The notes under the pieces were generated by a model, which made no database searches, was not told where the DNA came from, and saw nothing but the letters and a program-made list of their open reading frames with translations. 64,000 nt of DNA, taken from positions 62,001 through 126,000 of IMG/VR virus record IMGVR_UViG_3300042558_003926, one strand, 5' to 3'. The position numbers were made by a program, and so were the translations under genes. Positions 44,495-60,846 of this stretch are shown here, in pieces; within the stretch, counting starts at the first letter, position 1; the number at the start of each line of letters is the position of its first letter.

Positions 44495-44734
44495 ATGAAA
44501 AAGTATTCAGAATTACAGGAACTAAACGAGATGAAATACGGTCAGCCACTTTTCACAGAAAAGGATCGTATGAAAAATCTATTGGTAGCAGCATCAGGGA
44601 ATGACCAAAGAGTTTTAAATGATCTAGTTAACTGTTTAACTGACGAGCAGATGAAGAAGTGCTACGATAAGCTTTCCCAAGTATATGGTTATACTGGAAG
44701 CACTGGTCAAAAAATAGTTCCACCTAGTCTATAA
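44495..44734 (+). CDS. Small putative internal head protein (CTS-like N-terminus MKKYSELQELNE)
   Basis: N-terminus resembles the T4 IP capsid-targeting sequence; late motif upstream. Confidence 0.5.
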   Translation: MKKYSELQELNEMKYGQPLFTEKDRMKNLLVAASGNDQRVLNDLVNCLTDEQMKKCYDKLSQVYGYTGSTGQKIVPPSL

Positions 44735-44739
44735 TTTTA

Positions 44740-45450
44740 ATGAATTTAGTCGGAATAGATTTTTCGATCAACTCGCCAGCTTTCTGTTGTCTTAAAGATG
44801 GTGTATACACATGGGGTTCTGTGACCAGATCCGAGCGATCCAAAGAATCCCTAATCAAGAACACAAAGAAGCCATATTACTGGTTAGACTGTGACCCAAA
44901 TTTTACTCTGGATTTTATAGAGAAACAAGATTTACCTGAAGACTATAGCGGAAGAGAAAGAATGAAGATAGGGTACTTTTTAAGCATCGTAGATGGACTT
45001 TGGGACAGCATTAAGGGTATAATGGGTAATTCAGATTTTAGTGTGGCTATGGAGGGTTTAAGCTTCTCTTCGAACGGAAACGCACTAATAGATATTTCGA
45101 TGGCAACATCTTTGCTAAGAGAAAGAATAATCAGAGAGGTTGGTGTGGATTCGTTTTACGTTTTCTCTCCAACCAGTATAAAAAAGTTTGCATTAAAGGG
45201 CAATGCTAAAAAAGATGAGCTTTACGAAGCTCTATGTAATTTTAAAGAGGACGAAACAAATTTAGAGGTATTTACTAGAATGTTAGCAACCAACAAGGAA
45301 GAATGGGTAACTAAAGCCAAACAGGTCAATAAACCCATTGATGATATTGTTGATGCAACTTGGATTAATTTGTATTTAAAAAAGGAATTAGAGGGAATTT
45401 ATGAAATTAAGAGAAAATTGGAAACCGAAAAAGCTTCTCCTACGATCTGA
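44740..45450 (+). CDS. RuvC-like Holliday junction resolvase
   Basis: VGIDFS (D), AMEG (E), PTSIKK..G.AKK and DDIVDA (DxxD) RNase H-fold motifs. Confidence 0.8.
   Translation: MNLVGIDFSINSPAFCCLKDGVYTWGSVTRSERSKESLIKNTKKPYYWLDCDPNFTLDFIEKQDLPEDYSGRERMKIGYFLSIVDGLWDSIKGIMGNSDFSVAMEGLSFSSNGNALIDISMATSLLRERIIREVGVDSFYVFSPTSIKKFALKGNAKKDELYEALCNFKEDETNLEVFTRMLATNKEEWVTKAKQVNKPIDDIVDATWINLYLKKELEGIYEIKRKLETEKASPTI
45253..45281 (+). promoter_or_regulatory. Putative middle promoter GAAAC-N18-TAGAAT inside the resolvase gene
   Basis: Same spacing as three intergenic copies; upstream of the gp32 leader. Confidence 0.5.
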
Positions 45451-45514
45451 TATCTTCGGAATCGTTATAAATAAAAAATCACGCAACGTTATAAATCTTA
45501 GGGATGGACCATAG
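45401..45514 (+). CDS. Putative 37-aa leader peptide MKLRENWKPKKLLLRSDIFGIVINKKSRNVINLRDGP*
   Basis: Translated by hand; GAGGG 5 nt upstream of the ATG; absent from the ORF track (<60 aa); ends within the structured leader. Confidence 0.4.
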   Translation: MKLRENWKPKKLLLRSDIFGIVINKKSRNVINLRDGP

Positions 45515-45555
45515 ATCCAATCCCTCTTATTGTGGGCTATCCAATCGTCCTAAGA
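45496..45555 (+). promoter_or_regulatory. Structured RNA leader of gp32 (alternative hairpins / possible pseudoknot)
   Basis: TCTTAGG/CCTAAGA outer stem; AGGGATGGA can pair with either TCCAATCCCT or TCCAATCGTCCT; followed by about 50 nt of A/T tract. Confidence 0.55.
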
Positions 45556-45607
45556 ATTGGAACAAAAATAAAAATTTAAATAAAAACTAAAATTAATTTA
45601 AAAAATC

Positions 45608-46582
45608 ATGAGCAATTTAGACATTTTTAATTTGGACGCAGAGTCATTTGTAACAAAGACTAACCAAGCAGGAGGATCGAAAGATCTTGAATTTTACAAG
45701 CCTTATCCAGAAGATGGAAAGGATGGAGTTTATAAATCATTAATCAGATTTATCCCTAATTCAGAAAACCCAGCAAAATCCAAAATCCACAAATACTATG
45801 TGTATTTGAACGACCCAGTAAGTGGAAATGGATTTGCAGTAGATTGTCCTTCAACAGTTGGTAAAAAATCTATTCTTAAGGACCTTTTCTGGAAATTGAA
45901 AAATTCACATTCAGCAGCTGATCAAGAATTGGCAAAGAGTTTTTCTAGAAAGGAAGATTTCTATTCACTAGTTCAAATCGTACAAGATAAGAACAACCCA
46001 GATTTAGAGGGAAAAATTATGATCTTTAAGTTTGGAAAGAAAATAAATGAAATGATTGAGGCACAGCTTCAGCCAGAGTATGGCGATGCTTGTAATCCTT
46101 ACGATCTTTTCGAAGGTAGAGAATTTGCTATCAGTGTAAGAAAAGTTGGTGAGTGGAATAACTACGACCTATGTTCATTCGTAGGTGAAAGAACACCAAT
46201 TAAAATCGAGGGATCACAAATGAAGAAAAACCAAGAGGATATGAATAAAATCTTGGAATACTTAAAGACAGGTCCTAGAAATCTATCATCTTTCGATTAC
46301 AAAGATTGGGATGACGAGGTAAACGATAAAGTTATGGCGGTAATCAGAAATACTGTACCAGAGCAAAGAATCGTAAACGAGATAGTAGGAGCTGTTTCTT
46401 CCGCACCTTCTAAACCAAATCCGGTTCAGCAGCCGCCAGTATCTACCCCTAGCTCATCTTCGCAAATGTTAGAAGAAGTTTCTAACACTAAAGTCGGAGG
46501 ACAAACACCGAAAGAGACCTCGTATGAAGCTCCTTCTACGTCGTCTTCTACATCATTAGATGATCTTTACGCAGATCTTTAA
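45608..46582 (+). CDS. Single-stranded DNA-binding protein (T4 gp32-like)
   Basis: LIRFIP, DCPSTVG, GKIMIFKFGKKI, NPYDLFEGREF, WNNYD; acidic tail LDDLYADL. Confidence 0.9.
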   Translation: MSNLDIFNLDAESFVTKTNQAGGSKDLEFYKPYPEDGKDGVYKSLIRFIPNSENPAKSKIHKYYVYLNDPVSGNGFAVDCPSTVGKKSILKDLFWKLKNSHSAADQELAKSFSRKEDFYSLVQIVQDKNNPDLEGKIMIFKFGKKINEMIEAQLQPEYGDACNPYDLFEGREFAISVRKVGEWNNYDLCSFVGERTPIKIEGSQMKKNQEDMNKILEYLKTGPRNLSSFDYKDWDDEVNDKVMAVIRNTVPEQRIVNEIVGAVSSAPSKPNPVQQPPVSTPSSSSQMLEEVSNTKVGGQTPKETSYEAPSTSSSTSLDDLYADL

Positions 46583-46596
46583 TTAAAATTATAAAT

Positions 46597-46629
46597 TGGG
46601 GGCAAGTCTCTGGGCTGCCCCCATTTTTT
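46597..46629 (+). terminator. Intrinsic terminator after gp32
   Basis: TGGGGGCA...TGCCCCCA stem followed by TTTTTT. Confidence 0.75.
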
Positions 46630-46634
46630 ATATT

Positions 46635-47699
46635 ATGGAGATATCAAAGGTAGAATCTTTAGTAAGAGAAGTTCTTACTAGACAATTTCCAGGTAATCCC
46701 GGAAAGCAGATAGTTTACAAAGCTGGAAACAGACTTAATGTATCCTGTCCGTATTGTGGGGATTCTAATGACTCCAGAAAGAAAAGGGGTAATTTTTACC
46801 TAGATACGTTAGCTTATAAGTGCTATAATGGTGGATGTGGTATCTATAAGGATTCTATAAGTTTCTTTAAGGATTTCTCCGTATATTCAAAATTATCCAG
46901 CAACGAAAAAAGTGAGATTAGATCAATACTAGATGAGAATAGAGGGAAGAGAAGAAGCGTGTATGGTAATATCGACATTTCTCTATTTTTCGAGAATGAT
47001 ATAAACGAAATTCTGATCAGCAGATCTGATTTTATGGAAAAGCTAGGTCTTCGTAATGTTTTCGGATCTACCATACAAAGATACATCCAGAGGAGACATC
47101 AGAAAATGGATAATCGATTTGCTTGGGATGCCAAGAAAGAAAAGATATTTTTATTCAATCTTACACCTGATGATAAGATAATTGGTCTACAGGTAAGAAA
47201 TATGCAATCAGTTAAAGGAAGTTCAAAGTATCTAACATATAAGCTGAGCGGAATATATGAAAAACTTCTTAGAGTTACCGACGAGGAAACTTTAAACCGT
47301 GCTAGAGAGGTTGATCCAATCTCCCATGTTTTTAATATAGGGACCCTGGATTTCAGCTCCCCTATTACTGTTTTTGAAGGACCAATGGATTCCTGGTTTT
47401 GGAACAATTCAGTAGGACTATGCTCCATAGAAAATAAGTTTCCGTTTGAGGTTGAAGGAGTTAGATATTGGTACGATTGGGATAGAGCTGGCATAGAAAA
47501 AAGCATGGACTTACTAAGTAAGGGGGTTTCTGTTTTTAATTGGGGAAAATTCTTAGAGGAAAATAACATAACAAAAAATAGAAAATGGGATTTGAATGAC
47601 TTGGTCGTTCATCTCAGATCAACCGGAAAAAAGATAAAGAGATTGGAAGGTTATTTTACTGATGATATATTAGACTTAAGATATTTTATCAATGAGTGA
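46635..47699 (+). CDS. DNA primase (T4 gp61-like)
   Basis: Zn ribbon CPYCGDS...YKCYNGGC; TOPRIM VFEGPMDS and YDWDRAG; WDLND. Start reassigned to ATG 46635. Confidence 0.9.
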   Translation: MEISKVESLVREVLTRQFPGNPGKQIVYKAGNRLNVSCPYCGDSNDSRKKRGNFYLDTLAYKCYNGGCGIYKDSISFFKDFSVYSKLSSNEKSEIRSILDENRGKRRSVYGNIDISLFFENDINEILISRSDFMEKLGLRNVFGSTIQRYIQRRHQKMDNRFAWDAKKEKIFLFNLTPDDKIIGLQVRNMQSVKGSSKYLTYKLSGIYEKLLRVTDEETLNRAREVDPISHVFNIGTLDFSSPITVFEGPMDSWFWNNSVGLCSIENKFPFEVEGVRYWYDWDRAGIEKSMDLLSKGVSVFNWGKFLEENNITKNRKWDLNDLVVHLRSTGKKIKRLEGYFTDDILDLRYFINE

Positions 47700-47931
47700 G
47701 GATGAAATAAATAAAAGAATAGAGGAATGGGAATCTAGCATAAATGTAGAGCTAAAGCCCAAACTTAAATACCCGCTCAAAATAATAGAATCGAATATTC
47801 TAAACGTGGATGTTGAATTTGTAGAACCCTCAATAGATCCACCTAAGGAAAAGACTAAGAAATCTTCCACCCAATCTTTTAAAGTGGTGGACATTTCAAA
47901 AAGAAAAAACAAAAACAAAAAACTATTCTAA
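47692..47931 (+). CDS. Small hypothetical protein
   Basis: 79 aa; overlaps the primase end and the UvsY start (translational coupling); basic C-terminus. Confidence 0.55.
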   Translation: MSEDEINKRIEEWESSINVELKPKLKYPLKIIESNILNVDVEFVEPSIDPPKEKTKKSSTQSFKVVDISKRKNKNKKLF

Positions 47932-48377
47932 TGTCAAGTTCAGAGAAAGCAGATTTTAATAAGTTATTCGAGATCGAAAGGTCCGAATGGAGGGAGAAAG
48001 TACAGGTCCTAGCGTTGGAGATGAAGGACATTAGGACTCTTGCTAAAGCACAGGTTGACTTATTCAGTCAAAGACAGGTACTTTTAGAGTACAGCTATAA
48101 GCTGGCTTCAATAGTTTCTAAATTAAATTCCAAATACAGAACGGAAAAATCTAGAAAATTAAAGGAGTACTCAGAGAAAAGTGACATTAGATACGGTGCA
48201 AATGAAAAAACGGTTCTGATCGAGGGAGACATTAGCGAGATAACAGAGAAGATTGAGCTAGTTGAGGGTCACCGAAAATTTATCGATCAAACAGTACAAA
48301 CATTAGATCATATGCTTTATGGTATTAAATCCAGAATATCTCTGGAAGAATATCTACGAGGATCTACTGTAAAATAA
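47931..48377 (+). CDS. uvsY: Recombination mediator UvsY-like
   Basis: 148-aa all-helical protein (...LIEGD...TLDHMLYGIKSRI) directly upstream of UvsW, as in T4-like phages. Confidence 0.65.
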   Translation: MSSSEKADFNKLFEIERSEWREKVQVLALEMKDIRTLAKAQVDLFSQRQVLLEYSYKLASIVSKLNSKYRTEKSRKLKEYSEKSDIRYGANEKTVLIEGDISEITEKIELVEGHRKFIDQTVQTLDHMLYGIKSRISLEEYLRGSTVK

Positions 48378-48386
48378 AATATATTT

Positions 48387-49925
48387 ATGTTAAGATTTCA
48401 AGTTTCGGAGGATCAGCAATGGATGATATTAGTAGAGGCTCTTGACGAGGTAGAGAAAAAGCAGATAGACATTTCATTAACACAAAAAATTCATAACTTC
48501 TATTTCCATCCTCTCGTTAAGAAGAAGATATGGGACGGAAGCATATGCTTCATAGAGAAAAAAGGAGGCATGTGGAAAATCCCGATAGGATTATGGAGGG
48601 AAGTACTAGAAATAGGTGAAAGATATCAAATAGAGATATCGATTAAAGGTCTAGAGGATATTATACTCAATAGCATTTCATTAGAGGATTTTACACAATG
48701 GGTTAATGATTTCTTCAAGGATGGGATAGGAGGGGATATTAATAAAAAACCAAGAGACTATCAAATAGAGACAGCCTGGAAGATTATTAGGTATAGATAT
48801 TCAGTTTCCGAGGTGGCAACATCATCAGGAAAGACCTTAATATCATTTATGATCTTTGCATACTTGAAATCTAAAGGGCTGATTCGAAAGTTTCTAATGA
48901 TTGTTCCTAATACAAATCTTGTTTTCCAAGGTAGCGACGATTTCGTAGATTATGGATTAGATAGGCTCGGAGTAAAAATTCAGCAGATAGGGGGAGGAAG
49001 CAAAATAAGAGAAGGGTGCGATCTAATAATAGGAACCTTCCAATCTCTGGTTAAGCAGGAATCTGATTTTTATGAGGGCATAGATGCAGTTTTTGTTGAC
49101 GAGGCACATCACACTAACAGTATGTCCATAAAGAAAATTGTAGCACATTGCATGGGATCTAAGTGGAGATTCGGTTTAACTGGAACACTAACGAAAAAAG
49201 GAACCGCTGATTATCTCACTATACAGCAATTTTTAGGTCCTCTGGTTGTAGAAATTCCACCGAGCTTCCTTTTTGATAACAATTATGCTACCCCGGTTTC
49301 GATTCGTGTTATTATTATGGACTGGCTTGAACCCGAATATAAGGATAAGCTAGCCGAACTTAAAACAAACTCAAATAATATTGAGGGGAATGAAATATAC
49401 AATATAGAGAGAAAACTTGTTGTTGAGAGCAAGAAAAGATTGAATTATATTGTTGATTTTATAAGTAAAGGATCTAAGAATTCCCTGGTCCTTTTTCAAT
49501 CAGTTAAAGACGAGTACGGAAAACAGATATGGAATCATCTGAGAGAAAAAAACAGGGACAAGGAGGTTTTTTATGTTGACGGTGACACCAGTGAGAATTT
49601 AAGGGAAGAATATAAGTCAAGAATGTCAGCAGGGGAGAATAAGGTTCTGGTAGCAACATATGGCACATTTTCTACGGGGATATCAATAAATAACATCCAT
49701 AATATTTTCCTAGTGGAGTCATACAAAAGTGAAATCCTGATCAAGCAGAGTTTAGGTAGGGGTATGAGAAAAATGGAGGGGAAAGAAAAGGTAAATGTCA
49801 TCGATTTCGTTGATGATTTTTCTACCGGAAAATACCAGAATTACCTTCTAAAGCACAGCAGGGAGAGAATCGAGATCTATAAAAGAGAATTATTTGAATA
49901 TAAGATCTACAATATAAAACTCTAA
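48387..49925 (+). CDS. uvsW: SF2 DNA helicase UvsW
   Basis: WDGSI, PRDYQ, ATSSGKT, DEAHH, GLTGT, TYGTFSTGISI, QSLGRGMR. Confidence 0.92.
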   Translation: MLRFQVSEDQQWMILVEALDEVEKKQIDISLTQKIHNFYFHPLVKKKIWDGSICFIEKKGGMWKIPIGLWREVLEIGERYQIEISIKGLEDIILNSISLEDFTQWVNDFFKDGIGGDINKKPRDYQIETAWKIIRYRYSVSEVATSSGKTLISFMIFAYLKSKGLIRKFLMIVPNTNLVFQGSDDFVDYGLDRLGVKIQQIGGGSKIREGCDLIIGTFQSLVKQESDFYEGIDAVFVDEAHHTNSMSIKKIVAHCMGSKWRFGLTGTLTKKGTADYLTIQQFLGPLVVEIPPSFLFDNNYATPVSIRVIIMDWLEPEYKDKLAELKTNSNNIEGNEIYNIERKLVVESKKRLNYIVDFISKGSKNSLVLFQSVKDEYGKQIWNHLREKNRDKEVFYVDGDTSENLREEYKSRMSAGENKVLVATYGTFSTGISINNIHNIFLVESYKSEILIKQSLGRGMRKMEGKEKVNVIDFVDDFSTGKYQNYLLKHSRERIEIYKRELFEYKIYNIKL

Positions 49926-49935
49926 TTTAAACGGG

Positions 49936-49943
49936 GATATATA
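49936..49943 (+). promoter_or_regulatory. Late promoter motif GATATATA
   Basis: Intergenic, heads the 49962-54015 cluster. Confidence 0.65.
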
Positions 49944-49961
49944 CATAAAAAGTTTTGTCTG

Positions 49962-50507
49962 ATGAAAATTAAGAAATTTGATTCCTTTGTATCCGAAAGT
50001 TTAAATGAAGACTCGTCACATTACGAGGGCAAAAACAAATTTAGCAAATGGCTAAGGGGAGTAAATGATAGGATTAAGTCCGAAGTGGACGATTCCAAAT
50101 TTTATTCTAGATATACAGACCCAAATACTGATAAATTTGTAGCTGCAAACAAGGCCACGGCTTTAATACCCGGAGCTTTTAGATTAATCATAGGAGCAGG
50201 TGCTGCTATATCAGACTTCTTTACAAAAGGGGATAATAAGGACACAGTATCAAAATACTCCAAAGAAGATCTTAGTAATAAAAAGGAAGAGATCATAAAT
50301 AAATGGGAGCAGGACAATATTAAATCAGATACAACAGAAGCTGACGCAGAAAAATTTTATAAATCTGGTGTTATCAAGGGTAAAAAATTCTTTGGACCCG
50401 ATTATGACCCGGTAAAACCCAAAAACAAGGACGAAGAAATCTACACTGATTATATAGATGGTGTGATGGAAAGATATTACAAAAGAACATCCAAATATGC
50501 CAAATAA
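49962..50507 (+). CDS. Putative internal head protein (MKIKKFDSFVSESLNE)
   Basis: CTS-like N-terminus; one mildly hydrophobic segment. Confidence 0.55.
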   Translation: MKIKKFDSFVSESLNEDSSHYEGKNKFSKWLRGVNDRIKSEVDDSKFYSRYTDPNTDKFVAANKATALIPGAFRLIIGAGAAISDFFTKGDNKDTVSKYSKEDLSNKKEEIINKWEQDNIKSDTTEADAEKFYKSGVIKGKKFFGPDYDPVKPKNKDEEIYTDYIDGVMERYYKRTSKYAK

Positions 50508-51426
50508 ACTGATGGATTTCTCAGGATTCTCCAGAGTGTTTGAAGGCGGAGCAGCTATAAAATCATCTAGGAGTATTAGAGAGGACGAGTTTCCTAAAAC
50601 ACTGGATAGCATAAAATCTATTTTATTTCCCATCCTAGGTATAAATCCAACCAAGGAGGGATCTCAATATCTTGTAATCGGTAGTATTGGGAAAAAGAAA
50701 AATCCGGAGGATACATCAGGAGATCTTGATATAGGATATGACAGCAGCTGGTTTTCTAGAGAACATGGGATCACTGCTAAGGAGTGTTCATCTGAGGTTT
50801 ATAAATTGGTCTCTCAGGATCTTCCTGAAAAATTAGGATTCGACCCGGAAATAAATCATATGAAGGGATTAAGCATAGTTAGTTTAGGCTGGCCAATCCA
50901 GGGTGATTTTAGTAAAGGGATAGTTCAGTTAGATTTAATCCCTGTATCCAGCATGGATTGGGCTAAATTTATTTATTATTCACCTAATTATAAAATAGCG
51001 GAGAGCAAATATAAATCGGCTCATAGAAATTGGTTATTGACAGCAATACTAGCATCAAGAAGAAGAATAATTAAGGTAGACCCGGATGGACAGGTATTGG
51101 ATTATGATTCTCCTGTTCTAATGCTCAGCGATGGTTTATTCTGGCACACAAAGTCATATGCAGGAAAAATTAAGTCCAGGTTAAAGAACCCTAAAAAAAT
51201 AGAGGGAAGCGAGAGATTTGTTACCAGGAATCCACAAGAATTTATAGATTTTACACTGGGGCCAGGGTATACTCCGGAGGAGGTAAAAACATTCGAGCAA
51301 GTATTTTCTATAATTAGCGATCCTTCTTTTGAATTATATGGTAATCTGGAGGAGATTAAGGATAAATTTAAGGAATATCTAGAAAGAACCGGTTTAGAGG
51401 TTCCGTCCGAAATAAATAGAATTTAA
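50497..51426 (+). CDS. Pol-beta-superfamily nucleotidyltransferase
   Basis: IGSIGKK...SGDLDIG (GS..DxD) plus a third Asp in VQLDL; leader MDFSGFSRVFE|GG. Confidence 0.75.
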   Translation: MPNKLMDFSGFSRVFEGGAAIKSSRSIREDEFPKTLDSIKSILFPILGINPTKEGSQYLVIGSIGKKKNPEDTSGDLDIGYDSSWFSREHGITAKECSSEVYKLVSQDLPEKLGFDPEINHMKGLSIVSLGWPIQGDFSKGIVQLDLIPVSSMDWAKFIYYSPNYKIAESKYKSAHRNWLLTAILASRRRIIKVDPDGQVLDYDSPVLMLSDGLFWHTKSYAGKIKSRLKNPKKIEGSERFVTRNPQEFIDFTLGPGYTPEEVKTFEQVFSIISDPSFELYGNLEEIKDKFKEYLERTGLEVPSEINRI

Positions 51427-51459
51427 TAGATATAATATACATTACTAAAAGAAGAAGAT

Positions 51460-53472: not shown

Positions 53473-54015
53473 ATGAATAAATTCGTAACCAAATTTAGCG
53501 ATTTTAGTTTTCATATGAACGAGAGCGACGGATTCGGTACTTCTCCATTCTTAATGAAAAAGGAATCCGATATCTACCATTATTTCTTTAATCTAGATAA
53601 AGAAAGCGGAGAGACAGACGCATACCATTTAATTATCGGTAAGTATTCTGATCGTGAAGTAATCGAAGGGCCTAAAAATTCTTATTGCGTTCTAACGATA
53701 AATGAGATATCACCAGAAATCCTGGAAGACATTGCAGCTGATAAGGAAGATATTCCTAAGATGAATTCACAGAAATTTAAAATGGGATCTGGCGAACTAT
53801 CAAGATTGATGAAGTATGTTTACAAGTGTGTAAATGATTATCTCCAGATTAATCCAAAAGTTATTAGAATATATGATGAGGTTCAGGATAACTTAGTCTA
53901 TGACGGAAAGGGCTCATACCTAGAATATATGAAATCGATATCTCTTTCTGAACTTGGTACCAATTGGGCAGTACAAGAGGGATCGTCAAAAATGACCTTA
54001 ATTATCAGCAGATAA
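53473..54015 (+). CDS. Putative internal head protein (MNKFVTKFSDFSFHMNE)
   Basis: CTS-like N-terminus; no other motif recognised. Confidence 0.55.
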   Translation: MNKFVTKFSDFSFHMNESDGFGTSPFLMKKESDIYHYFFNLDKESGETDAYHLIIGKYSDREVIEGPKNSYCVLTINEISPEILEDIAADKEDIPKMNSQKFKMGSGELSRLMKYVYKCVNDYLQINPKVIRIYDEVQDNLVYDGKGSYLEYMKSISLSELGTNWAVQEGSSKMTLIISR

Positions 54016-54044
54016 GAAACTTTTTATAAATACATAGGTATAAT
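54016..54044 (+). promoter_or_regulatory. Putative middle promoter GAAAC-N18-TATAAT
   Basis: Intergenic, 22 nt before the Hc1-like ATG; also contains TATAAATA. Confidence 0.65.
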
Positions 54045-54066
54045 TACAAATTAAAAATAAAACAAA

Positions 54067-54243: not shown

Positions 54244-54261
54244 TCACTAAAAAATTATCAA

Positions 54262-54498
54262 ATGAGCTATTGGGTAGTTAAAACCAAATTCGAATCTGGA
54301 GAGGTAAAAAAGAATGGGGATCCAGTTTATAAAAAAGCAGAATTTCTAGTTGCGGGTGACTCTGTCATCGAAGTAGAAAAGAAAGTTGCAGAGTATATGG
54401 ACGGCACCATCGGAGGCTACGAATCTTTCCAGGTTACAAAAACCAAAATCGAAGCCGTTATATACGACAAAAACAAATATGAAGAACAACTCCTCTAA
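54262..54498 (+). CDS. DUF4494-like protein
   Basis: W..K.KFE.....G..K...FLV.GDS..E.E pattern and TKIEAV resemble Bacteroidota DUF4494. Confidence 0.6.
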   Translation: MSYWVVKTKFESGEVKKNGDPVYKKAEFLVAGDSVIEVEKKVAEYMDGTIGGYESFQVTKTKIEAVIYDKNKYEEQLL

Positions 54499-54730
54499 AT
54501 CCGCTGAAACCAGTTTCTATGCTCCACCACAATCTCCAATTGCAATACAGCCCGGTGATACCGGATTCAAAACTGTAGGTAAGGGATATAATAGATTTAT
54601 CTGGACATTTGCGGACTGGCAGAAGGGGAAGAAGAAGATTATAGATCCTGATACCAATTGGGATCTGGCTTCAAAACCAATCACCCAGAAAGAATGGGAC
54701 AAAAAACAAAAAGACCTATATTTAAAATAG
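54479..54730 (+). CDS. Small hypothetical protein (83 aa)
   Basis: ATG at 54479 is in frame with track ORF 54386-54730; overlaps the previous gene by 20 nt. Confidence 0.55.
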   Translation: MKNNSSKSAETSFYAPPQSPIAIQPGDTGFKTVGKGYNRFIWTFADWQKGKKKIIDPDTNWDLASKPITQKEWDKKQKDLYLK

Positions 54731-54741
54731 GTCTTTTTTTT
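54708..54741 (+). terminator. Intrinsic terminator
   Basis: AAAAAGACCTAT / ATAGGTCTTTTT stem with T-run; late motif GATATATA follows at 54742-54749. Confidence 0.7.
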
Positions 54742-54764
54742 GATATATAGAATAAAGAAATTCT

Positions 54765-55535
54765 GTGGTTAAAATATTATCATTTAGCGAATATTTATTT
54801 GAAAGCTCGTCTCAGACGAGCAATGATTTAATTAATAGTTTTAAAAATGCCATAAAAACTACTCAGGCAGAAGAATCACCACGAGGGAGTAATAAAGGTC
54901 CTAAAGTCGAACCTTTACTGAAAGGAGTTGGTGCTGCCCCAGGTGCACCCTGGTGTGTAGCTTTTGTTCATGGTGTTCTAAATAAAACCAAATTTAGCCA
55001 GGATATTAAAAGCCAGATACCTAAAGATGCGGCGGTTAAATACCACTGGGAAAGAACCAAGGCTAAAAAAATCACATATAAACCAGGGATGGATCCTAAA
55101 AACATTCTGCCTGGTATGGTTTTTTGTTATCTAAGTAAGGATAAAAAAACTGGTACATATCCGGGACACGGTCACACTGGAATAGTTTTAAGTGTGGATA
55201 AGGAGAAAAGAGAATGGACTGGAATAGAAGGTAATACTAATCCACTTGATGGCGGTAGAGAGGGATATGGAACTTTTATAGTTACCAGAAAAATTGATGA
55301 TCCCAGTATATCCAAGGACAAAAAGGATCACCCATCTAAACCACTCGGATTTATTGATTATTTTTCCTCTCATAGAAAAAATCCGGAGTTTACTAAAACA
55401 TTCTCAGAAAACCTAAAGAGATTAAGAGACGATCTTCGACCAAAAACAAATAAAGAGATAGCTTATCTTAAGGCTAATCCAGGAGTATTAAAGGATTACG
55501 AGAATAACTATAATAACAGAAATAAAAGCAAATAA
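54765..55535 (+). CDS. CHAP-domain peptidoglycan hydrolase with CTS-like leader
   Basis: E..RGSNKGP.V, APWCVAFV (Cys), GHGHTGIV (His), IEGNT; GTG start; leader KILSFSEYLFE. Confidence 0.85.
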   Translation: MVKILSFSEYLFESSSQTSNDLINSFKNAIKTTQAEESPRGSNKGPKVEPLLKGVGAAPGAPWCVAFVHGVLNKTKFSQDIKSQIPKDAAVKYHWERTKAKKITYKPGMDPKNILPGMVFCYLSKDKKTGTYPGHGHTGIVLSVDKEKREWTGIEGNTNPLDGGREGYGTFIVTRKIDDPSISKDKKDHPSKPLGFIDYFSSHRKNPEFTKTFSENLKRLRDDLRPKTNKEIAYLKANPGVLKDYENNYNNRNKSK

Positions 55536-55536
55536 A

Positions 55537-55905
55537 ATGCCAGCAAGAAGCACAGCACAGCAGAGATTAATGGGTCAGGCATACGCTATAAAAATAGGAG
55601 CAATGGAACCTGAAGATTTAAATCCTAGATACCGAGCAGAGATTTTAAAGATTGCTAAAGGTATGACTAAAGATGAGCTTAAAAAATACGCTGAAACTAG
55701 ACAAAAAGGGCTTCCCCACTATGTTGACGAGTCGGAAATGAGTACATCATTGGAACCTATTCCATCTGACACCATGCCCAAATTTAATCCACATGGCCCG
55801 GGAAAAATAGTTCCATTCCTAGATCCCGATGCTAAACAAAAGAAGAAGGGGAGGGGTAACCTACAAAACCTTAAGGATTATAGAGATTGGATCAATCAGA
55901 AATAA
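55537..55905 (+). CDS. DUF3008-like protein
   Basis: MPARSTAQQRLMG.AYA.K...MTKDELKKYAET.QKGLP. Confidence 0.65.
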   Translation: MPARSTAQQRLMGQAYAIKIGAMEPEDLNPRYRAEILKIAKGMTKDELKKYAETRQKGLPHYVDESEMSTSLEPIPSDTMPKFNPHGPGKIVPFLDPDAKQKKKGRGNLQNLKDYRDWINQK

Positions 55906-55908
55906 TTC

Positions 55909-56496
55909 ATGTCTAGATTTCCCTCAAATCCAAAGATAGGGCAGGCCTTCCTTCCAAATCAGACTAATTTATATGTTTGGGGTGGACATCAATGGGTTCC
56001 AGGAACGGGAGTTTATGGATCTTTCTATGATATCCAGGACCAAACAGCCTCGGCTAGTACCGCAACCCCTATGATATTCAGGACTACTGATTTTTCTTAT
56101 GGTGTTTCTATTAAAGCTGACACTAGCGGGAATTTAACAAGAATATCTCCAGAGCACCCAGGAAGATATAATATTCAATTTTCTGCACAATTAGATAGGG
56201 TATCCGGATCTGGATTGGTCCAGGTTGACATATGGCTTAGAAAAAATGATGTTGATGTTCCATGGACAGGTACTAAAGTAACTCTTTCCGGTAATTCTAA
56301 TGCTTCCAAAATTGTTGCTGCTTGGAATTTCTTCGCCCAAACCCAATATGATTCGGACTACTTCCAGCTGATGTGGAGAACGACAGATGTCAACATACAT
56401 ATAATCTCGGAACCTGCAAACTCTGCACAACCCAATCCCGCAGCGTATCCTGGTATTCCTTCGATCATTCTCACCGTAAATCAAGTAGGATTCTAA
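55909..56496 (+). CDS. Small fibre/decoration protein with a C1q/TNF-like jelly-roll domain
   Basis: N-terminal FPSNPKIGQ...YVWGGHQW; YGSFYD, GRYNIQFSAQL, DIWLRKND, DYFQLMW, PSIILTV. Confidence 0.55.
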   Translation: MSRFPSNPKIGQAFLPNQTNLYVWGGHQWVPGTGVYGSFYDIQDQTASASTATPMIFRTTDFSYGVSIKADTSGNLTRISPEHPGRYNIQFSAQLDRVSGSGLVQVDIWLRKNDVDVPWTGTKVTLSGNSNASKIVAAWNFFAQTQYDSDYFQLMWRTTDVNIHIISEPANSAQPNPAAYPGIPSIILTVNQVGF

Positions 56497-56509
56497 GAAT
56501 ATATAGATT

Positions 56510-56923
56510 GTGAAACACGTTGTAAACTTTGAGGAATACGATCCAGCTGACGAGTATAAATTAGATTCTCGTAGATCGATTAATTTGGATAGAATAAGAA
56601 AATCCAGAGAATATAAAAGGATCATAGATCTTGGTTTTGAAGAGGAGACATCACATCAGCAGGATCTAAATAACACCATGAAGTTTATTAGAACCGAGAA
56701 CAAGCAAAGAGAGAAAGGACATGGTGATGTTTTTTATACAATACACCCGACCGGAACAGTTAGAAGATATAACCCTATAAGATCTAAAGAGACACCAGAG
56801 GGAAGCGGAAATGATATCAAGAAATTCATCGAACCGTTTAAGAGCATAGCAGATTACAAAAAAGGTTTGAACTATCTCTGGCAATATCTTAAGAGAAAAG
56901 AAGATAGAGGAGATTATAGATAA
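56510..56923 (+). CDS. Hypothetical protein (MKHVVNFEEY leader)
   Basis: GTG start preceded by GAATATATA (56497-56505); CTS-like N-terminus. Confidence 0.55.
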   Translation: MKHVVNFEEYDPADEYKLDSRRSINLDRIRKSREYKRIIDLGFEEETSHQQDLNNTMKFIRTENKQREKGHGDVFYTIHPTGTVRRYNPIRSKETPEGSGNDIKKFIEPFKSIADYKKGLNYLWQYLKRKEDRGDYR

Positions 56924-56928
56924 TAAAT

Positions 56929-57159
56929 ATGTGTGATTGTGGAGGATATAGCGTTACTGAACCTCTAAATCCCAGAAGGGGAGCAAAGGAGGTTAGCCAA
57001 ATAGACAACAAGTGGATTCTGGATAATCTAAACAGGAAACTTTTGGTTCAAGGTCCCATCTACGATATATACAATGATATTATAGGTTACATAACAAAGA
57101 ATGAGGATGGTAACACGGTTAGAATCTTCACCCATAATATCAAACAAATATTAGATTAA
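56929..57159 (+). CDS. Small hypothetical protein
   Basis: 76 aa; MCDCGG start; tight gene packing. Confidence 0.55.
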   Translation: MCDCGGYSVTEPLNPRRGAKEVSQIDNKWILDNLNRKLLVQGPIYDIYNDIIGYITKNEDGNTVRIFTHNIKQILD

Positions 57160-57163
57160 ACTT

Positions 57164-57634
57164 ATGTTTTATCCAACAGGAAATACAACCAAAGGAAGAT
57201 GCCTAGTCTGCATGGAGGACGAGAAACCAGAAATTGCAGAAGCACTAAACGAGTGCAACGAATCTTGCGTGACCGAGTGCATGGGAAAATGGTTAGAAGA
57301 GAAAAACTACTGCGTTGAAAAATGGCAGCTTAAGGAGTATCTTAAAGAAATGGGATGCAACGAGGATAAGATCATGGAGGATATGGGTGCTGCTCCAGCT
57401 CCTACCGCTGCTCCAGCCCCAGGACTTGCAACATTAGGTAATGTCCCAGGTATGGGTAATCCAACTCCTCCTTCCAATGATGGAACTAATGCTGGTTTTT
57501 ATGATTCAAGCAAAACAGGAAGCGGTGATAAATTTACCACATTAACTGCAGGGACTGCAGCTGCTAAGAAGAAAGGCAAAAAGGGTAAGAATCTTATATC
57601 TTATATGGATTTTATAAGGAATAGAAAAAAATAA
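57164..57634 (+). CDS. Hypothetical Cys/Glu-rich protein with low-complexity tail
   Basis: 156 aa; LNE/LKE/ME sites; C-terminal NLISYMDFI. Confidence 0.55.
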   Translation: MFYPTGNTTKGRCLVCMEDEKPEIAEALNECNESCVTECMGKWLEEKNYCVEKWQLKEYLKEMGCNEDKIMEDMGAAPAPTAAPAPGLATLGNVPGMGNPTPPSNDGTNAGFYDSSKTGSGDKFTTLTAGTAAAKKKGKKGKNLISYMDFIRNRKK

Positions 57635-57641
57635 ATCAGGG

Positions 57642-57724
57642 TGTCATTTTGACAATTCAATTTATAAAAAACACGGGGAAAGAAGACATTTAGTCTTCTT
57701 TTTTTGTGTGGAACTGTTTTTGTA
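57642..57724 (+). promoter_or_regulatory. Putative sigma54-like promoter (TGGAAC-N5-TTGT, 57709-57723) with upstream palindrome TGTCA-N3-TGACA (57642-57654)
   Basis: Exact -24/-12 spacing, two mismatches to TGGCAC-N5-TTGC. Confidence 0.4.
57671..57709 (+). terminator. Hairpin / intrinsic terminator
   Basis: AAAGAAGAC-ATTTA-GTCTTCTTT plus T-run; extendable by G:U pairs to ACAC/GTGT. Confidence 0.65.
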
Positions 57725-57750
57725 CTAAGATGAATAAAAAATAAAAAATC

Positions 57751-58131
57751 ATGAACACAAAAGAATTTAGAAACATGTTTCCAACAATTTTATCATCTAC
57801 ACTAAACGATTCCATTTTAGATAGCATCATATCTTTAAAATCTGGGGTATCTAAGAACTCATACAAGACGGAGGTAATAGATGGAAACCTTAGAATAGAA
57901 TTTCCTTTGCCTGGTTTATCTAAGGATGACATCTCGGTTTCTTTTGAAAGCGGTAAGCTTATCCTAGAGGTCAAGAAATCAGGGAATTGGTCGCTGGAGG
58001 GTAAGAGCACCTATTTGGTGTCGGAGTCATTCGACCCGGAAGGAGCTTCAGCGGAAATGAAGAATGGTGTTCTTGAGGTAAAAATTCCGGAAAGATCTAA
58101 AACTGGATCAAAAAAGATAACGATCATCTAA
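57751..58131 (+). CDS. Small heat-shock protein (Hsp20/alpha-crystallin)
   Basis: LPGLSKDDISVSFESGKLIL...SAEMKNGVLEVKIP. Confidence 0.9.
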   Translation: MNTKEFRNMFPTILSSTLNDSILDSIISLKSGVSKNSYKTEVIDGNLRIEFPLPGLSKDDISVSFESGKLILEVKKSGNWSLEGKSTYLVSESFDPEGASAEMKNGVLEVKIPERSKTGSKKITII

Positions 58132-58165
58132 TTTATTAAATTCCGAAATTTTTTAGTTTTTCCGT

Positions 58166-58173
58166 GATATATA
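58166..58173 (+). promoter_or_regulatory. Late promoter motif GATATATA
   Basis: Intergenic, upstream of 58209. Confidence 0.65.
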
Positions 58174-58208
58174 AATGACAATTTTAAAACTAAAATAAAA
58201 TAATTATC

Positions 58209-59498
58209 ATGGCAAGACCAGTATTAAATTTCGCAGATTTCTTGATCGAGTCTGCAAGAATGATCAACGAGGGATATAGCTTTTCTGAAGCTATGGAATC
58301 ACTAAACGCATTTACCCAAACTAAGGGAATGAGTCTTTCAAGCGGAAACCAGAAAACTTATGTGAAGGAAGCTCTAGCAAATATTGAATTAATGGCTAAA
58401 CAAAACTCGGTAAGTCCTGAGACTGTAGTTACTGCTTTAGGTGATGCTTTGGGATCAATAATTTCAGATTCTATTGAAACTAAGAATCTAAAACTTTATT
58501 TAGACAATTGTGGAGTAGTTTCCAATAAATTAAAAATTACAGGGGTAACGGCAGGATCTGTAAAATGTGATGCTATACCATCAACTTCAGTGGAAGCTGC
58601 TAAGAAAAATGGAAACAAGGTACTTTTAACTGATCTTCTAACATCAATTAATTTAGCTAATGCAGAGGCAAGAAAATCTAAGACTTATGCTAAACAGAAA
58701 AAAGCTGGTAAACCTTTCGAACTTAACGTAGATAAGGAAGGTAATCTGATTGATGGAAGTTATGACAAACAGATATTTATAACTAATACATCTGGGTCTA
58801 CAAAATTCGAATGGAAGCTAAATACATTCTCTAATCCAGTAACACCGGCACAGGATGATTTTTCTTACGGGTCTGATTCTGTTGAACTGAACACCGCCGA
58901 TAATGGAATAGCTAATGATGTTGGATATGTAAATCTTGTACTCTATTCAGTAGAGAGTATTGCTGATGGTAAAACATCCTATAATGTTACTGACGTTGTG
59001 CCTGTAACAATTCCAACTAAAGCACCAGATAGCGAGAAGAAAATTGAGATCACAGACTATAACGGTGCATATTTTTCTCAGGGTAAATATGAATTAACCG
59101 AAACTGGTAAAAAAGCAATCTATGCTGCTATCCAGCAAAACTTTACCTCAATCAAAGAAGTAACGATAAATGGTTATGCTTCTAAAGAGGGAACAGTAGA
59201 GGTTAACACGCAACTATGTAAAGATAGAGCAGCCGAAGCAGCAAAATTCATTAAAACTTTATCTAAGGATGCAACAGTTACTGCTTCGGAAACTGCAAAT
59301 ATCCAGCCAGCTGATAACACGGACAAAAAGGAAGCTTGGAGAAAAATATCATTAGATATAAAAGGTACATCCGTAATTCCGGGTGATGTTAAAGATGTCA
59401 TAAAATTCATAAGTCAGGACGATACGATTTATTCAGAAGATTATACTCTTCGTCAGACGATATTCCAGTTTGCTATTGAGATAGACACTGAAGGTTAA
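58209..59498 (+). CDS. OmpA C-terminal (peptidoglycan-binding) domain protein with CTS-like leader
   Basis: FSQGKYELT..GK, INGYASKEG..VNTQLCKDRA, WRKI; leader VLNFADFLIE...INE; no signal peptide. Confidence 0.7.
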   Translation: MARPVLNFADFLIESARMINEGYSFSEAMESLNAFTQTKGMSLSSGNQKTYVKEALANIELMAKQNSVSPETVVTALGDALGSIISDSIETKNLKLYLDNCGVVSNKLKITGVTAGSVKCDAIPSTSVEAAKKNGNKVLLTDLLTSINLANAEARKSKTYAKQKKAGKPFELNVDKEGNLIDGSYDKQIFITNTSGSTKFEWKLNTFSNPVTPAQDDFSYGSDSVELNTADNGIANDVGYVNLVLYSVESIADGKTSYNVTDVVPVTIPTKAPDSEKKIEITDYNGAYFSQGKYELTETGKKAIYAAIQQNFTSIKEVTINGYASKEGTVEVNTQLCKDRAAEAAKFIKTLSKDATVTASETANIQPADNTDKKEAWRKISLDIKGTSVIPGDVKDVIKFISQDDTIYSEDYTLRQTIFQFAIEIDTEG

Positions 59499-59510
59499 AA
59501 TAATAAAACC

Positions 59511-59550
59511 CACAAAAAAGGGAATCCTTAAAGATTCCCTTTTTTTTGTG
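59511..59550. terminator. Bidirectional intrinsic terminator
   Basis: CACAAAAAAGGGAATC-CTTAAA-GATTCCCTTTTTTTTGTG between convergent genes. Confidence 0.85.
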
Positions 59551-59561
59551 AGAGATTGTTT

Positions 59562-60005
59562 TTATTCGATGGTGATTACAACGTAGTATGTTTCCCCGAT
59601 TTTAACCTGTTCTACCCAGAAATTTTTAGGAGTTCCGTATAATTCGAAGTAGTTCCCAAATTCGGGTCTTTGAATTGTTTTAATGGCACTTCCTGAGAAA
59701 AAGCTTGCTTCCAAGGAATTAACCAAATCGAAATCTCCATAAAGACGGCTGTTGATGTGGCCTTGTCCTTTAATGAATTCCTGACCCTTTGCGTAATTGA
59801 TGGCTCCTTCTTTTAGAGATGGATCTAATGTGAAATTAGTTCCGTAGTGGTTTTCCAAAGCAATCTCTACCGAGTCTTGGATCTGTTTCATTTTGTCAGC
59901 TGGTTTATTATTACCTGTACCGTTACCTGCAAAAGCAGTGCTGAAGAAAAAAGTAAGAGCGATTACCAATCCTGTTACTTTGCTGAAGATGTTTTTTGTT
60001 TTCAT
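59562..60005 (-). CDS. Secreted/periplasmic hypothetical protein
   Basis: Sec signal peptide MKTKNIFSKVTGLVIALTFFFSTAFA|G. Confidence 0.7.
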   Translation of the reverse strand: MKTKNIFSKVTGLVIALTFFFSTAFAGNGTGNNKPADKMKQIQDSVEIALENHYGTNFTLDPSLKEGAINYAKGQEFIKGQGHINSRLYGDFDLVNSLEASFFSGSAIKTIQRPEFGNYFELYGTPKNFWVEQVKIGETYYVVITIE

Positions 60006-60036
60006 AATTTCTATTTTTTTTAATTGATTTACATTT

Positions 60037-60044
60037 CAAATATA
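60037..60044 (-). promoter_or_regulatory. Bacteroidota primary-sigma -7 element TATATTTG
   Basis: Reverse complement of CAAATATA matches TAnnTTTG; 31 nt upstream of the ATG at 60005. Confidence 0.55.
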
Positions 60045-60155
60045 GAACACTAATACGAGGGAAAAAAGAAAAACTGTAATTTTTTTTAAAAAAATCCTCT
60101 ATACGTGCGTGCGCTTTTATTTTTAATATACGCATCGGTTTATTATCTTTATAAT

Positions 60156-60554
60156 ATGGAAATTAAACGAAGAGAGATCCTTATACAGGAAGAGTACATT
60201 AGCTCCCCGTGGAAAATGCTTGTTTGTTGCATTCTTCTAAATCAAACTAGCAATAAGCAAGTTAGACCGATTTTAAGCTCCGTATTTGAACTTATTCCAA
60301 ATCCCATATCTGCATCTGGGGTTGATCTTAAAGTCTTAGCAGAGGTCATAAAAACAACCGGATTTCAGAACATTAAAGCATCCAGAATAAAGAATCTCAG
60401 CCAAAAATGGAATGCTGGTTTTTCCGACGTATCAGAGCTCCCGGGAATAGGAAGATATGGGAAAGATTCATGGGAGATATTCGTAAATGGGAGAAGAGAC
60501 ATTTCTCCTACAGACAAGAAGCTTATTAAATATCTAGAAGATACTACTTTTTAG
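60156..60554 (+). CDS. MBD4-like HhH-GPD DNA glycosylase (stand-alone catalytic domain)
   Basis: LIQE...PWKMLVCCILLNQTS, LPGIGRYGKDSWEIF, PTDKKL..Y; start reassigned to ATG 60156. Confidence 0.8.
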   Translation: MEIKRREILIQEEYISSPWKMLVCCILLNQTSNKQVRPILSSVFELIPNPISASGVDLKVLAEVIKTTGFQNIKASRIKNLSQKWNAGFSDVSELPGIGRYGKDSWEIFVNGRRDISPTDKKLIKYLEDTTF

Positions 60555-60846
60555 GTTTTGCCTTTTCTCTGAAGGAACCCTTGATGTAATCTGTTACCTC
60601 TGACCCAGATCTTGTCTTTTCTTTTAGAAACTTGTTGAAAGCTTCGGATTTCCCCTCTTTATCCAGAAACATATTTACCTCCGCTGCTTCATACATTGCA
60701 TCAATAACTTCTGGCATTTGCGGATTTGCTGATGTGTAGTTTCTGGAATTTACCTTCACTTCACTGGCCTGACCTGGAACATCAACGCTTCCGGGTGAAT
60801 CTATCCACTCAAATAGGAAATTGTCGAAATTTTTTAAATTTTTCAT
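60544..60846 (-). CDS. Putative internal head protein (MKNLKNFDNFLFE)
   Basis: CTS-like N-terminus; GAATATATA on the minus strand at 60854-60862. Confidence 0.6.
   Translation of the reverse strand: MKNLKNFDNFLFEWIDSPGSVDVPGQASEVKVNSRNYTSANPQMPEVIDAMYEAAEVNMFLDKEGKSEAFNKFLKEKTRSGSEVTDYIKGSFREKAKPKK

Follow-up and report, generated by a model that had tools for sequence, protein, structure and literature searches.

In phage T4, the internal proteins IPI, IPII and IPIII and the protein Alt carry a short N-terminal propeptide, the capsid targeting sequence (CTS; MKTYQEFIAE), which is removed by the prohead protease gp21. In IPIII, targeting depends on residues 4 and 7 (Tyr, Phe) and processing depends on residues 8 and 10 (Ile, Glu) (PMC9026906). 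Giant phages of the phiKZ-like group (SPN3US, phiKZ, 201phi2-1) also have a gp21-related protease, dozens of head proteins, and propeptides thought to target proteins into the prohead and to be cut after Glu; however, these propeptides are mostly 80–160 residues long and share no sequence motif, and only 8 of about 50 SPN3US head proteins are cleaved (PMC5694885). In phage P1, a set of anti-defence proteins (Dar, defence against restriction) is loaded into the head during morphogenesis and delivered with the DNA; as we read these studies, loading depends on an ordered chain of specific proteins (Hdf, DarA) and not on a shared peptide tag (PMC12810830; PMC9024508). Encapsulin cargo-loading peptides are short terminal peptides that, after a flexible linker, address unrelated enzymes to the inside of an HK97-fold shell and can sit at either terminus, but they bind the shell protein directly, are not cleaved, have a different consensus, and involve no scaffold or protease.

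Here, we analyzed a 64,000-nucleotide stretch (the window) of a 289,651-bp T4-like jumbo phage from lake metagenomes (IMG/VR record IMGVR_UViG_3300042558_003926, positions 62,001 to 126,000). A first-pass annotation, made from the sequence alone, had described a CTS-like peptide on about 10 unrelated proteins between 44495 and 60846 of the window and had inferred an addressing code that loads diverse effectors into the head. The described peptides proved to be real, and the set is much larger than had been seen: about 68 proteins carry the tag, which is about 13 residues long and sequence-defined. The proposed capsid-targeting function was partly supported: it survived every in silico test that was run, whereas presence in virions, cleavage and ejection are untested.

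A shared N-terminal peptide on about 68 proteins

To confirm the peptides, we examined the ORFs of the interval. All eight N-terminal and both C-terminal peptides were present at their positions. The first, at 44495..44734 (+), is a 79-aa ORF with a weak tag, MKKYSELQELNE (matrix score 12.9); this is the weakest of the cited examples, as Leu replaces the second aromatic. A 181-aa ORF with no known domain (49962..50507, +) carries MKIKKFDSFVSESLNE, and its orthologues keep F..F and NE. The 309-aa tagged protein at 50497..51426 (+), MPNKLMDFSGFSRVFE-GGAAIK, showed a weak match to a Pol-beta-like nucleotidyltransferase fold. A 180-aa ORF (53473..54015, +) carries MNKFVTKFSDFSFHMNE-SDGFGTSP; in its orthologues the spacer between F..F and NE varies from 3 to 10 residues, while NE-SDGFGTSP is fixed. 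The 256-aa protein at 54765..55535 (+), MVKILSFSEYLFE, begins with GTG, is a tagged CHAP-domain peptidoglycan hydrolase (Pfam CHAP at residues 60–157), and has a tag that matches [FY]xx[FY][LIVM]xE. A 137-aa ORF (56510..56923, +), also with a GTG start, carries MKHVVNFEEY, and its orthologues have MKNLKKFNDY and MKNILSFKDY. The 429-aa protein at 58209..59498 (+), MARPVLNFADFLIE, contains an OmpA-like peptidoglycan-binding domain (Pfam OmpA at residues 288–374), and its tag matches the heptad described below. The last is a 100-aa ORF on the minus strand (60544..60846) with the tag MKNLKNFDNFLFE.

To determine how widespread the tag is, we built a position matrix from the region around the aromatic pair, leaving out the start Met, and searched the N-termini of all 378 ORFs of the genome. 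The matrix found 57–67 hits, whereas whole-protein shuffles gave 0–2 and shuffles confined to residues 2–22 gave 1–3. As the matrix was trained on these same N-termini, the test is partly circular, but the local shuffle showed that residue order matters, not just composition. A curated set of 68 proteins, starting with M-K-[NH]-[IL]-K-x-[FY]-x-x-F-x-x-E, was obtained, of which the "about 10" of the first-pass annotation are the local share. With the first 22 residues removed, these proteins fell into 56 BLAST-distinct families, confirming that the carriers are unrelated. We asked whether chance, the composition of A/T-rich N-termini or recent duplication of one gene family might explain the pattern. 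One ten-member LRR paralogue family does contribute ten tags, and N-termini are A/T-rich; however, the shuffles and the 56 families argue against this reading, the similarly A/T-rich Tenacibaculum phage PTm1 gave no convincing hit in 305 ORFs, and a strict DNA pattern gave 10 hits in this genome against 0 for the reversed control. This explanation was thus tested and not supported, and we consider it extremely improbable.

The carriers include CHAP (twice), SLT, Hydrolase_2, PG_binding_1, OmpA-like, LRR, nucleotidyltransferase and kinase domains. This abundance of cell-wall-active domains is as expected of proteins that act on entry. The first-pass annotation had not seen the tag on replication or baseplate proteins, and this holds in the window; genome-wide, there are two exceptions, an adenylate kinase with a strong tag and a DNA ligase with a weak one. 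Structure prediction with AF2 for the protein at 50497 gave pLDDT under 50 for residues 1–17 and above 90 for the rest: the tag is a detached appendage. Likewise, the adenylate kinase carries about 21 extra residues before its P-loop.

Two of the described peptides lie at C-termini. A 122-aa DUF3008 protein (55537..55905, +) ends with NLQNLKDYRDWINQK after a Lys/Gly-rich linker, and a 156-aa Cys-rich protein (57164..57634, +) ends with NLISYMDFIRNRKK after a KKKGKKGK linker. C-terminal copies were not enriched genome-wide by the matrix. However, both are conserved in every orthologue found, as NLQNLKDYRDW, kept in all 14 related loci, and as [LS]-[IL]-S-[YF]-x-D-F-[IV], respectively. They lack a following Glu site, and their role as tags is unproven.

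Correspondence with the T4 signal and the head scaffold

To compare the tag with the T4 CTS, we examined its conserved positions. The first aromatic lies at residue 4–10 in all 68 tags, consistent with a short peptide at the extreme N-terminus. Position 0 is F/Y/W in 66 of 68 tags, and position +3 is F/Y in 54 of 68 and Leu in 10, in agreement with the two aromatic targeting residues of T4 IPIII. The four functional residues of IPIII map onto tag positions 0, +3, +4 and +6, and the T4 CTS scored 14.2 bits on this phage's matrix, a score reached by only 31 positions in the whole proteome. With respect to processing, 43 of 68 tags have [LIVMF]-x-E right after the second aromatic, against 75 of 310 untagged N-termini (24%; p = 2e-9), and about 15 match the exact T4 spacing; about a third of the tags have no nearby h-x-E site, so whether the processing determinants are shared across the set is undecided from these counts. 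In contrast to T4, a lineage-specific extension, M-K-[NH]-[IL]-K, places Met six rather than three residues before the first aromatic, and this distance is exact in 51 of 68 tags. The tags do not fit a Sec or lipoprotein signal peptide: they are amphipathic and acidic and lack a hydrophobic h-region of 10 or more residues after a basic N-terminus; true signal peptides occur on other ORFs of the genome and look different.

Orthologues in relatives keep the aromatics and the Glu. In the family of the protein at 50497, F8 and E16 are invariant in all 120 homologues and F11 is conserved in 119. Tagged genes also flank the capsid gene, and their tags persist in relatives with 71–90% capsid identity while flanking residues vary.

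We next searched for head-assembly genes. Directly upstream of a gp23-like capsid gene, the genome encodes a 676-aa protein in which a gp21-family prohead protease (Peptidase_S77, 34 bits, above the cut-off; phrog_207 head maturation protease, E = 1e-38) is fused to a scaffold with a repeat-rich C-terminal part. This scaffold holds 13 tandem Y-S-E-Y-L-A-E repeats of the same heptad as the tag. The heptad [FYW]xx[FYW][LIVM]xE occurs 13 times in the scaffold and 19 times in the first 30 residues of ORFs, and elsewhere it is at chance level. The repeats are conserved in 37 relatives, whereas phage PTm1 has neither the scaffold repeats nor the tags; the link between repeats and tags nevertheless rests on very few independent lineages. 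A complex prediction of the tag with the protease-scaffold gave no answer. A protease and a scaffolding core, as in T4, are encoded next to the capsid gene.

An upstream motif shared with structural genes

The first-pass annotation had also proposed that most tagged genes follow GATATATA, and this claim holds: six of the eight N-tagged genes in the interval have the motif 11–42 nt upstream. Copies of ATATATA lie at 44470–44476, 49937–49943, 54743–54749, 56499–56505 and 58167–58173, ahead of the genes at 44495, 49962, 54765, 56510 and 58209, respectively, and 14 nt upstream of the minus-strand gene at 60846 (about 60854–60860). This promoter-like (G)ATATATA motif is 14-fold enriched upstream of ORFs, and every one of the 12 plus-strand copies in the window lies just upstream of an ORF start. 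Genome-wide, ATATATA was found within 100 nt upstream of 42 of 68 tagged genes against 31 of 310 others (p = 1e-18), and it also precedes the sheath, protease-scaffold, head-closure and baseplate genes. When operons were followed, 64 of 68 tagged genes sat in units headed by GATATATA. A gp55-like late sigma factor is encoded at genome positions 27693–28052.

Equal frequency of the motif among early genes had been named in advance as an outcome that would overturn the capsid-targeting reading. We found the early-type leader on 0 of 68 tagged genes and 24 of 310 untagged genes, so this comparison did not refute it. Timing was inferred from sequence only, and the GATATATA class also heads the MazG-RNR-adenylate kinase unit; whether the carriers are made together with head proteins is thus not settled by the shared motif, and "late, virion-only" is not a clean description of this class.

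We also considered whether the similarity reflects a nucleotide-level signal at the 5' end of short-leader late mRNAs, such as a translation-initiation enhancer, with the peptide as a by-product. The promoter-like motif sits only 11–30 nt from the ATG, so leaders are very short, Met is at a fixed distance from the aromatics in 51 of 68 tags, and the tag is made largely of residues with A/T-rich codons. However, synonymous codon use in the tags matches genome-wide use for K, N, I, F, Y, E and D, indicating that selection acts on the peptide and not on the DNA. Moreover, substitutions are conservative at the protein level (F/Y/W, I/L/V), structural genes with the same upstream motif lack the tag, and the motif also occurs at conserved C-termini and inside the scaffold. 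We therefore regard this reading as very unlikely.

A proposed capsid-targeting propeptide system

Taken together, we favor, with moderate confidence, the explanation that the peptide is a T4-type capsid targeting sequence, a short N-terminal amphipathic propeptide, in an expanded system. In this model, the two aromatic residues, plus the hydrophobic residue three positions before them, would dock the carrier onto the prohead scaffolding core, the likely docking surface being the scaffold's own tandem Y-S-E-Y-L-A-E repeats. After the shell closes, the gp21-family protease would cut after the Glu that follows the second aromatic, the same h-x-E site that recurs in every scaffold repeat, and the mature cargo would be left free inside the head and could leave with the DNA. 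The sequences directly demonstrate the motif, its N-terminal position and its number, selection at the protein level, the protease-scaffold gene with its repeats, the shared upstream motif and conservation in relatives, whereas docking, cleavage, presence in virions and ejection are our inferences. There is no isolate and there are no proteomic or cleavage data, the one RNA run holds only a few read-length contigs, and sufficiency of the tag for packaging a foreign protein was not assayed. Several features differ from T4: about 68 carriers, roughly 17% of coding residues, far exceed the handful of CTS proteins known in T4; the scaffold itself is built of repeats of the tag heptad; conserved C-terminal copies exist; and the host is probably a member of the Bacteroidota. 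The strongest single tag, on an adenylate kinase downstream of MazG and ribonucleotide reductase, marks an unexpected cargo.

That adenylate kinase, in a nucleotide-metabolism unit, raises the possibility, which we consider unlikely but not negligible, that the peptide is a docking motif for another hub, such as a phage chaperone system (Hsp20 and DnaJ here, DnaK in relatives), a sliding clamp or another multi-protein assembly, in which case it would be neither removed nor lead to packaging. The motif works at either terminus in conserved form, as short linear docking motifs do; an Hsp20 gene lies among the tagged genes, and relatives carry DnaK in the same place; and the clamp-binding tail of T4-family polymerases also has aromatic residues three apart. 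However, the SSB, primase, helicase and polymerase in the window lack the tag, contrary to what a clamp-binding motif requires, and the carriers are mostly cell-wall enzymes, LRR proteins and unknowns, including six cell-wall-active and ten LRR proteins with no reason to bind a clamp. In addition, the heptad is repeated in the head scaffold and the conserved Glu in an h-x-E context fits a gp21-type site.

A more tentative extension is that cargo is loaded by repeat mimicry: the tag would be a single copy of the scaffold's own 14-residue repeat, and each of the 13 Y-S-E-Y-L-A-E units would be both a docking site for a tagged protein and a protease site. If so, a simple sequence code would define an ejected proteome of about 70 proteins, by far the largest encoded set known, most of them unknown or candidate host-takeover and counter-defence factors, and the code would extend across a whole clade of freshwater jumbo phages and to at least one 462-kb huge phage.

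If the tag works as in T4, the set of proteins that an uncultured jumbo phage injects could be read directly from its genome, which otherwise needs an isolate and virion proteomics. It would supply about 70 candidates for the first minutes of infection, comprising cell-wall enzymes, LRR proteins, nucleotidyltransferases, kinases and many unknowns, among which pre-made counter-defence proteins would be expected, and it would offer a short packaging tag for phages of Bacteroidota-type hosts. For T4 itself, the propeptides are described only as having affinity for the scaffolding core (PMC9026906), and the match between tag and scaffold repeat suggests how targeting works. A tag that works as in T4 would also show that the CTS principle is old and widespread among phages with T4-like heads.

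Genomic context and extent of the N-terminal tag

The 64-kb window comprises bases 62,001-126,000 of a single 289,651-bp contig, which was rated complete by CheckV and has about 36% G+C. Near-identical DNA was found in many lake-water metagenomes, whereas a megablast search of the interval against GenBank phages returned no match. The genome is that of a T4-like jumbo phage and encodes a gp23-like major capsid protein (genome 45326-47065), a Peptidase_S77 (T4 gp21) prohead protease fused to a scaffold (43277-45307), two portal paralogues, a tail sheath, head-closure and baseplate proteins, and a gp55-like late sigma factor. The portal paralogues lie in tandem (genome 29170-30843 and 30866-32476; both phrog_213), and the second starts with MAGFLDFLKP, which is tag-like. 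The family-B DNA polymerase ORF in the window (60918-62324) is only 468 aa long and represents the N-terminal part; in the relative PTm1 the polymerase is split and holds an intein, and the other half was not sought here. The nearest named relatives by capsid protein are distant, at 30-45% identity, and include Lak megaphages of Prevotella, huge phages from metagenomes, Tenacibaculum phage PTm1, phage PAU, and Chryseobacterium and Flavobacterium phages, which points to a Bacteroidota-type host. IMG/VR holds a large clade of closer relatives, with 71-90% capsid identity and genomes of 230-435 kb.

The first-pass annotation had placed a shared peptide at the N-termini of eight proteins and at the C-termini of two others, and this observation was confirmed: all ten peptides are present where it had located them. 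To determine how widely the peptide occurs, we built a position matrix around the aromatic pair and scored only positions -3 to +8, so that the start Met could not bias the result. The matrix found 57-67 N-terminal hits in 378 ORFs, whereas whole-protein shuffles gave 0-2 hits and shuffles confined to residues 2-22 gave 1-3. After curation, which included six ORFs whose true start is an internal Met, 68 proteins carry the tag, and these make up 17% of coding residues. The consensus is M-K-[NH]-[IL]-K-x-[FY]-x-x-F-x-[NSE]-E, and Met is exactly six residues before the first aromatic in 51 of 68. An origin by paralogy was rejected by clustering, as the proteins fall into 56 BLAST-distinct families once the first 22 residues are removed. 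An origin in composition was rejected by the local shuffles and by PTm1 as a negative control, because this similarly A/T-rich genome (305 ORFs) gave no convincing hit. The set recognized in the first-pass annotation is thus the local tenth of a genome-wide system.

We next examined whether the signal resides in the protein or in the DNA. Synonymous codon use inside the tags matches the rest of the genome for Lys, Asn, Ile, Phe, Tyr, Glu, and Asp, and a nucleotide-level element was rejected on this basis. Substitutions among orthologues are conservative at the protein level (F/Y/W and I/L/V). In the family of the 309-aa protein at window 50497, Phe8 and Glu16 are invariant in all 120 homologues (59-100% identical) and Phe11 in 119, while neighbouring positions vary freely. 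The signal is a peptide.

Comparison with the T4 capsid targeting sequence and the prohead scaffold

A review of the T4 work reports that in IPIII (MKTYQEFIAE) targeting depends mainly on residues 4 and 7, and processing on residues 8 and 10 (PMC9026906). These residues are Tyr, Phe, Ile, and Glu, and they map onto tag positions 0, +3, +4, and +6, which are the conserved ones here. The T4 sequence scores 14.2 bits on the matrix built only from this phage, and only 31 of about 88,000 proteome positions score as high. Forty-three of 68 tags have [LIVMF]-x-Glu directly after the second aromatic, against 75 of 310 untagged N-termini in the same stretch of residues (p = 2e-9), although a third of the tags have no clear protease site. 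In two window families, the Glu marks the border between a variable tag and a conserved body: F-x-x-F-(3 to 10 residues)-N-E | SDGFGTSP, and F-x-x-F-x-x-h-[FN]-E | GGAAIK.

The prohead protease-scaffold gene lies 18.7 kb upstream of the window (locus L003:7277-9307), and the C-terminal part of its product holds 13-14 tandem 14-residue repeats, Y-[ST]-[EK]-Y-[LVI]-[AS]-E-N-[LV]-D-x-x-I-x (YSEYLAENLDKxIx). The repeats are conserved in 37 relatives, and each carries a T4-type L-x-E site. The protein is 676 aa long, with the protease domain at about residues 1-250 and the scaffold repeat region at residues 285-490. The heptad [FYW]xx[FYW][LIVM]xE occurs 13 times in this one protein and 19 times in the first 30 residues of ORFs, of which 15 are clear tags, whereas it occurs 21 times everywhere else, which is the chance level of about 19 per shuffled proteome. 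The same short pattern is therefore concentrated in two places, the tags and the head scaffold. Whereas this concentration was observed directly in the sequences, it is our inference that the tag docks on, or co-assembles with, the repeat region, and that the protease cuts both at the same L-x-E site, the predicted Glu of the tags being at position +6 or in the next h-x-E; packaging, cleavage, and ejection are not shown by these data. A complex prediction of a 30-residue tag with the full protease-scaffold gave a score of 0.00, which counts neither for nor against the interaction. The comparison across genomes is consistent with a link between repeats and tags but rests on very few lineages: the scaffold of PTm1 has different repeats and its genome has no tags, while the 462-kb phage LR756500 has degenerate versions of the repeat and carries tags.

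Expression class, conservation, and spread of the tag

The motif ATATATA, usually GATATATA, is 14-fold enriched upstream of ORFs. It precedes the sheath, the protease-scaffold, head-closure-like, tape-measure-like, and baseplate genes, and the canonical untagged endolysin. All 12 plus-strand copies in the window (6135, 9539, 16439, 23240, 37108, 44470, 49937, 54743, 56499, 57065, 58167, and 62358) lie just upstream of an ORF start: five are before tail or baseplate-region genes, six before tagged-gene units, and one before MazG. The motif lies within 100 nt of 42 of 68 tagged genes, against 31 of 310 others (p = 1e-18), and when operons with gaps of 60 nt or less were followed, 64 of 68 tagged genes lie in units headed by it. 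Because the motif also heads MazG, ribonucleotide reductase, and the tagged adenylate kinase, the designation "late" is an inference from association with structural genes and from the gp55-like factor; the only RNA run holds a few read-length contigs and gives no transcript start sites. A second, host-like upstream pattern (TTTTTTATCC..TTAyWTTTA..TAACCAATTAAAA) precedes about 20 small ORFs at genome 253,000-266,000. There, TTTTTTATCCyGGG..TTAyWTTTA..ATAACCAATTAAAA ends 15-19 nt before the ATG of each ORF, and it looks like a host-type (Bacteroidota -7 box) early promoter plus a common leader. Its CAATTAA core was found before 24 untagged genes and no tagged gene. The first-pass annotation had stated in advance that an equal frequency of the motif in early proteins would count against its reading, and the tag was not found in the early-type class.

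Tagged genes flank the capsid gene (genome 39686, 47161, 48335, 49218, 54096, 55969, and 56419), and the same positions carry tags in relatives, with varied sequences such as MLSFYDFMNEDD, MLNFKDFKLQEAE, and MIKRYNQFLNEAS. We considered whether the tagged 387-aa protein downstream of the capsid gene is a gp24-like capsid paralogue, but no similarity was detected by BLASTP, and no Pfam or PHROG hit was obtained. The tagged genes of the window behave in the same way as those around the capsid gene, and relatives have extra tagged genes inserted among them. An Hsp20 gene (window 57751-58131) lies among the tagged genes; several relatives carry a DnaK-like gene at the same place (related loci L109-L111), and this genome has a DnaJ-like ORF at 135295.

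To evaluate the wider spread of the tag, a strict DNA pattern that captures about 15% of tags was applied. It gave 10 hits in this genome and 0-10 in seven relatives, of which one 85%-complete genome has none, whereas PTm1 gave 0 and Lak-A1 gave 1; reversed controls gave 0 throughout. The tag is absent near the capsid gene of LR756500 and nearly absent in Lak-A1. Elsewhere in LR756500.1, which has only 45% capsid identity, the strict pattern revealed at least 13 ORF starts reading MKYIKEYEEF or similar, against 1 in the reversed control. Literature searches found no description of this motif in jumbo or huge phages. The presence of tags in LR756500 indicates that the tag system is older than the focal clade.

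Tagged proteins, C-terminal copies, and interpretation

Most carriers have no known domain, and PHROG and Pfam searches gave no function for most tagged proteins. The remainder include CHAP, found twice (window 54765 and genome 248335), SLT (249379), Hydrolase_2 (208755), PG_binding_1 (288023), and OmpA-like (window 58209) domains, and six to ten LRR paralogues. The latter belong to a ten-member tagged paralogue family (genome 225923, 234424-239281, 273206-274696, and 278283), in which six members match Pfam LRR_4 and seven or more share the C-terminus LYRPEFEWVSPEE..KAY.GFKGMI. Two nucleotidyltransferases are tagged (39686 and window 50497, the latter from a weak Pol-beta-like fold match), as are an adenylate kinase (128426), which is an odd cargo, a RimK-type ATP-grasp protein (140786), GDPD (210018), a phosphoribosyltransferase (223818), DUF5661 (240411), and, with a weak tag, a DNA ligase. 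A block of ORFs at genome 182,000-191,000 on the minus strand has classic signal peptides or lipoprotein-like N-termini; some of these ORFs are 550-640 aa long, and they are unusual cargo for a phage. In the AlphaFold model of the window 50497 protein, residues 1-17 have pLDDT below 50, with a short helix at residues 8-15, while the domain is above 90. The tag is an appendage and not part of the fold.

Genome-wide, the matrix showed no enrichment at C-termini. However, the two C-terminal copies cited in the first-pass annotation are conserved in every orthologue, as NLQNLKDYRDW and [LS][IL]S[YF]xDF[IV], each after a Lys/Gly-rich linker, and a third protein (genome 200035) ends in NLISFEDFK. 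They lack a following Glu site, so that if they do dock on the scaffold they would not be removed, and we assign no role to them. T4 Alt and gp21 do have C-terminal propeptides (PMC9026906).

Taken together, the observation is greatly extended, and the proposal that the peptide targets its carriers to the capsid is partly supported: it is the best-supported explanation, which we hold with moderate confidence, although 68 cargo species is a large claim. The main rival, that the peptide is a docking motif for another hub, appears unlikely but is not excluded. The capsid targeting sequence itself is known from T4; what differs here, on the capsid-targeting reading, is that the T4 principle is expanded about ten-fold, with a scaffold made of the same heptad, in an uncultured clade of freshwater jumbo phages.
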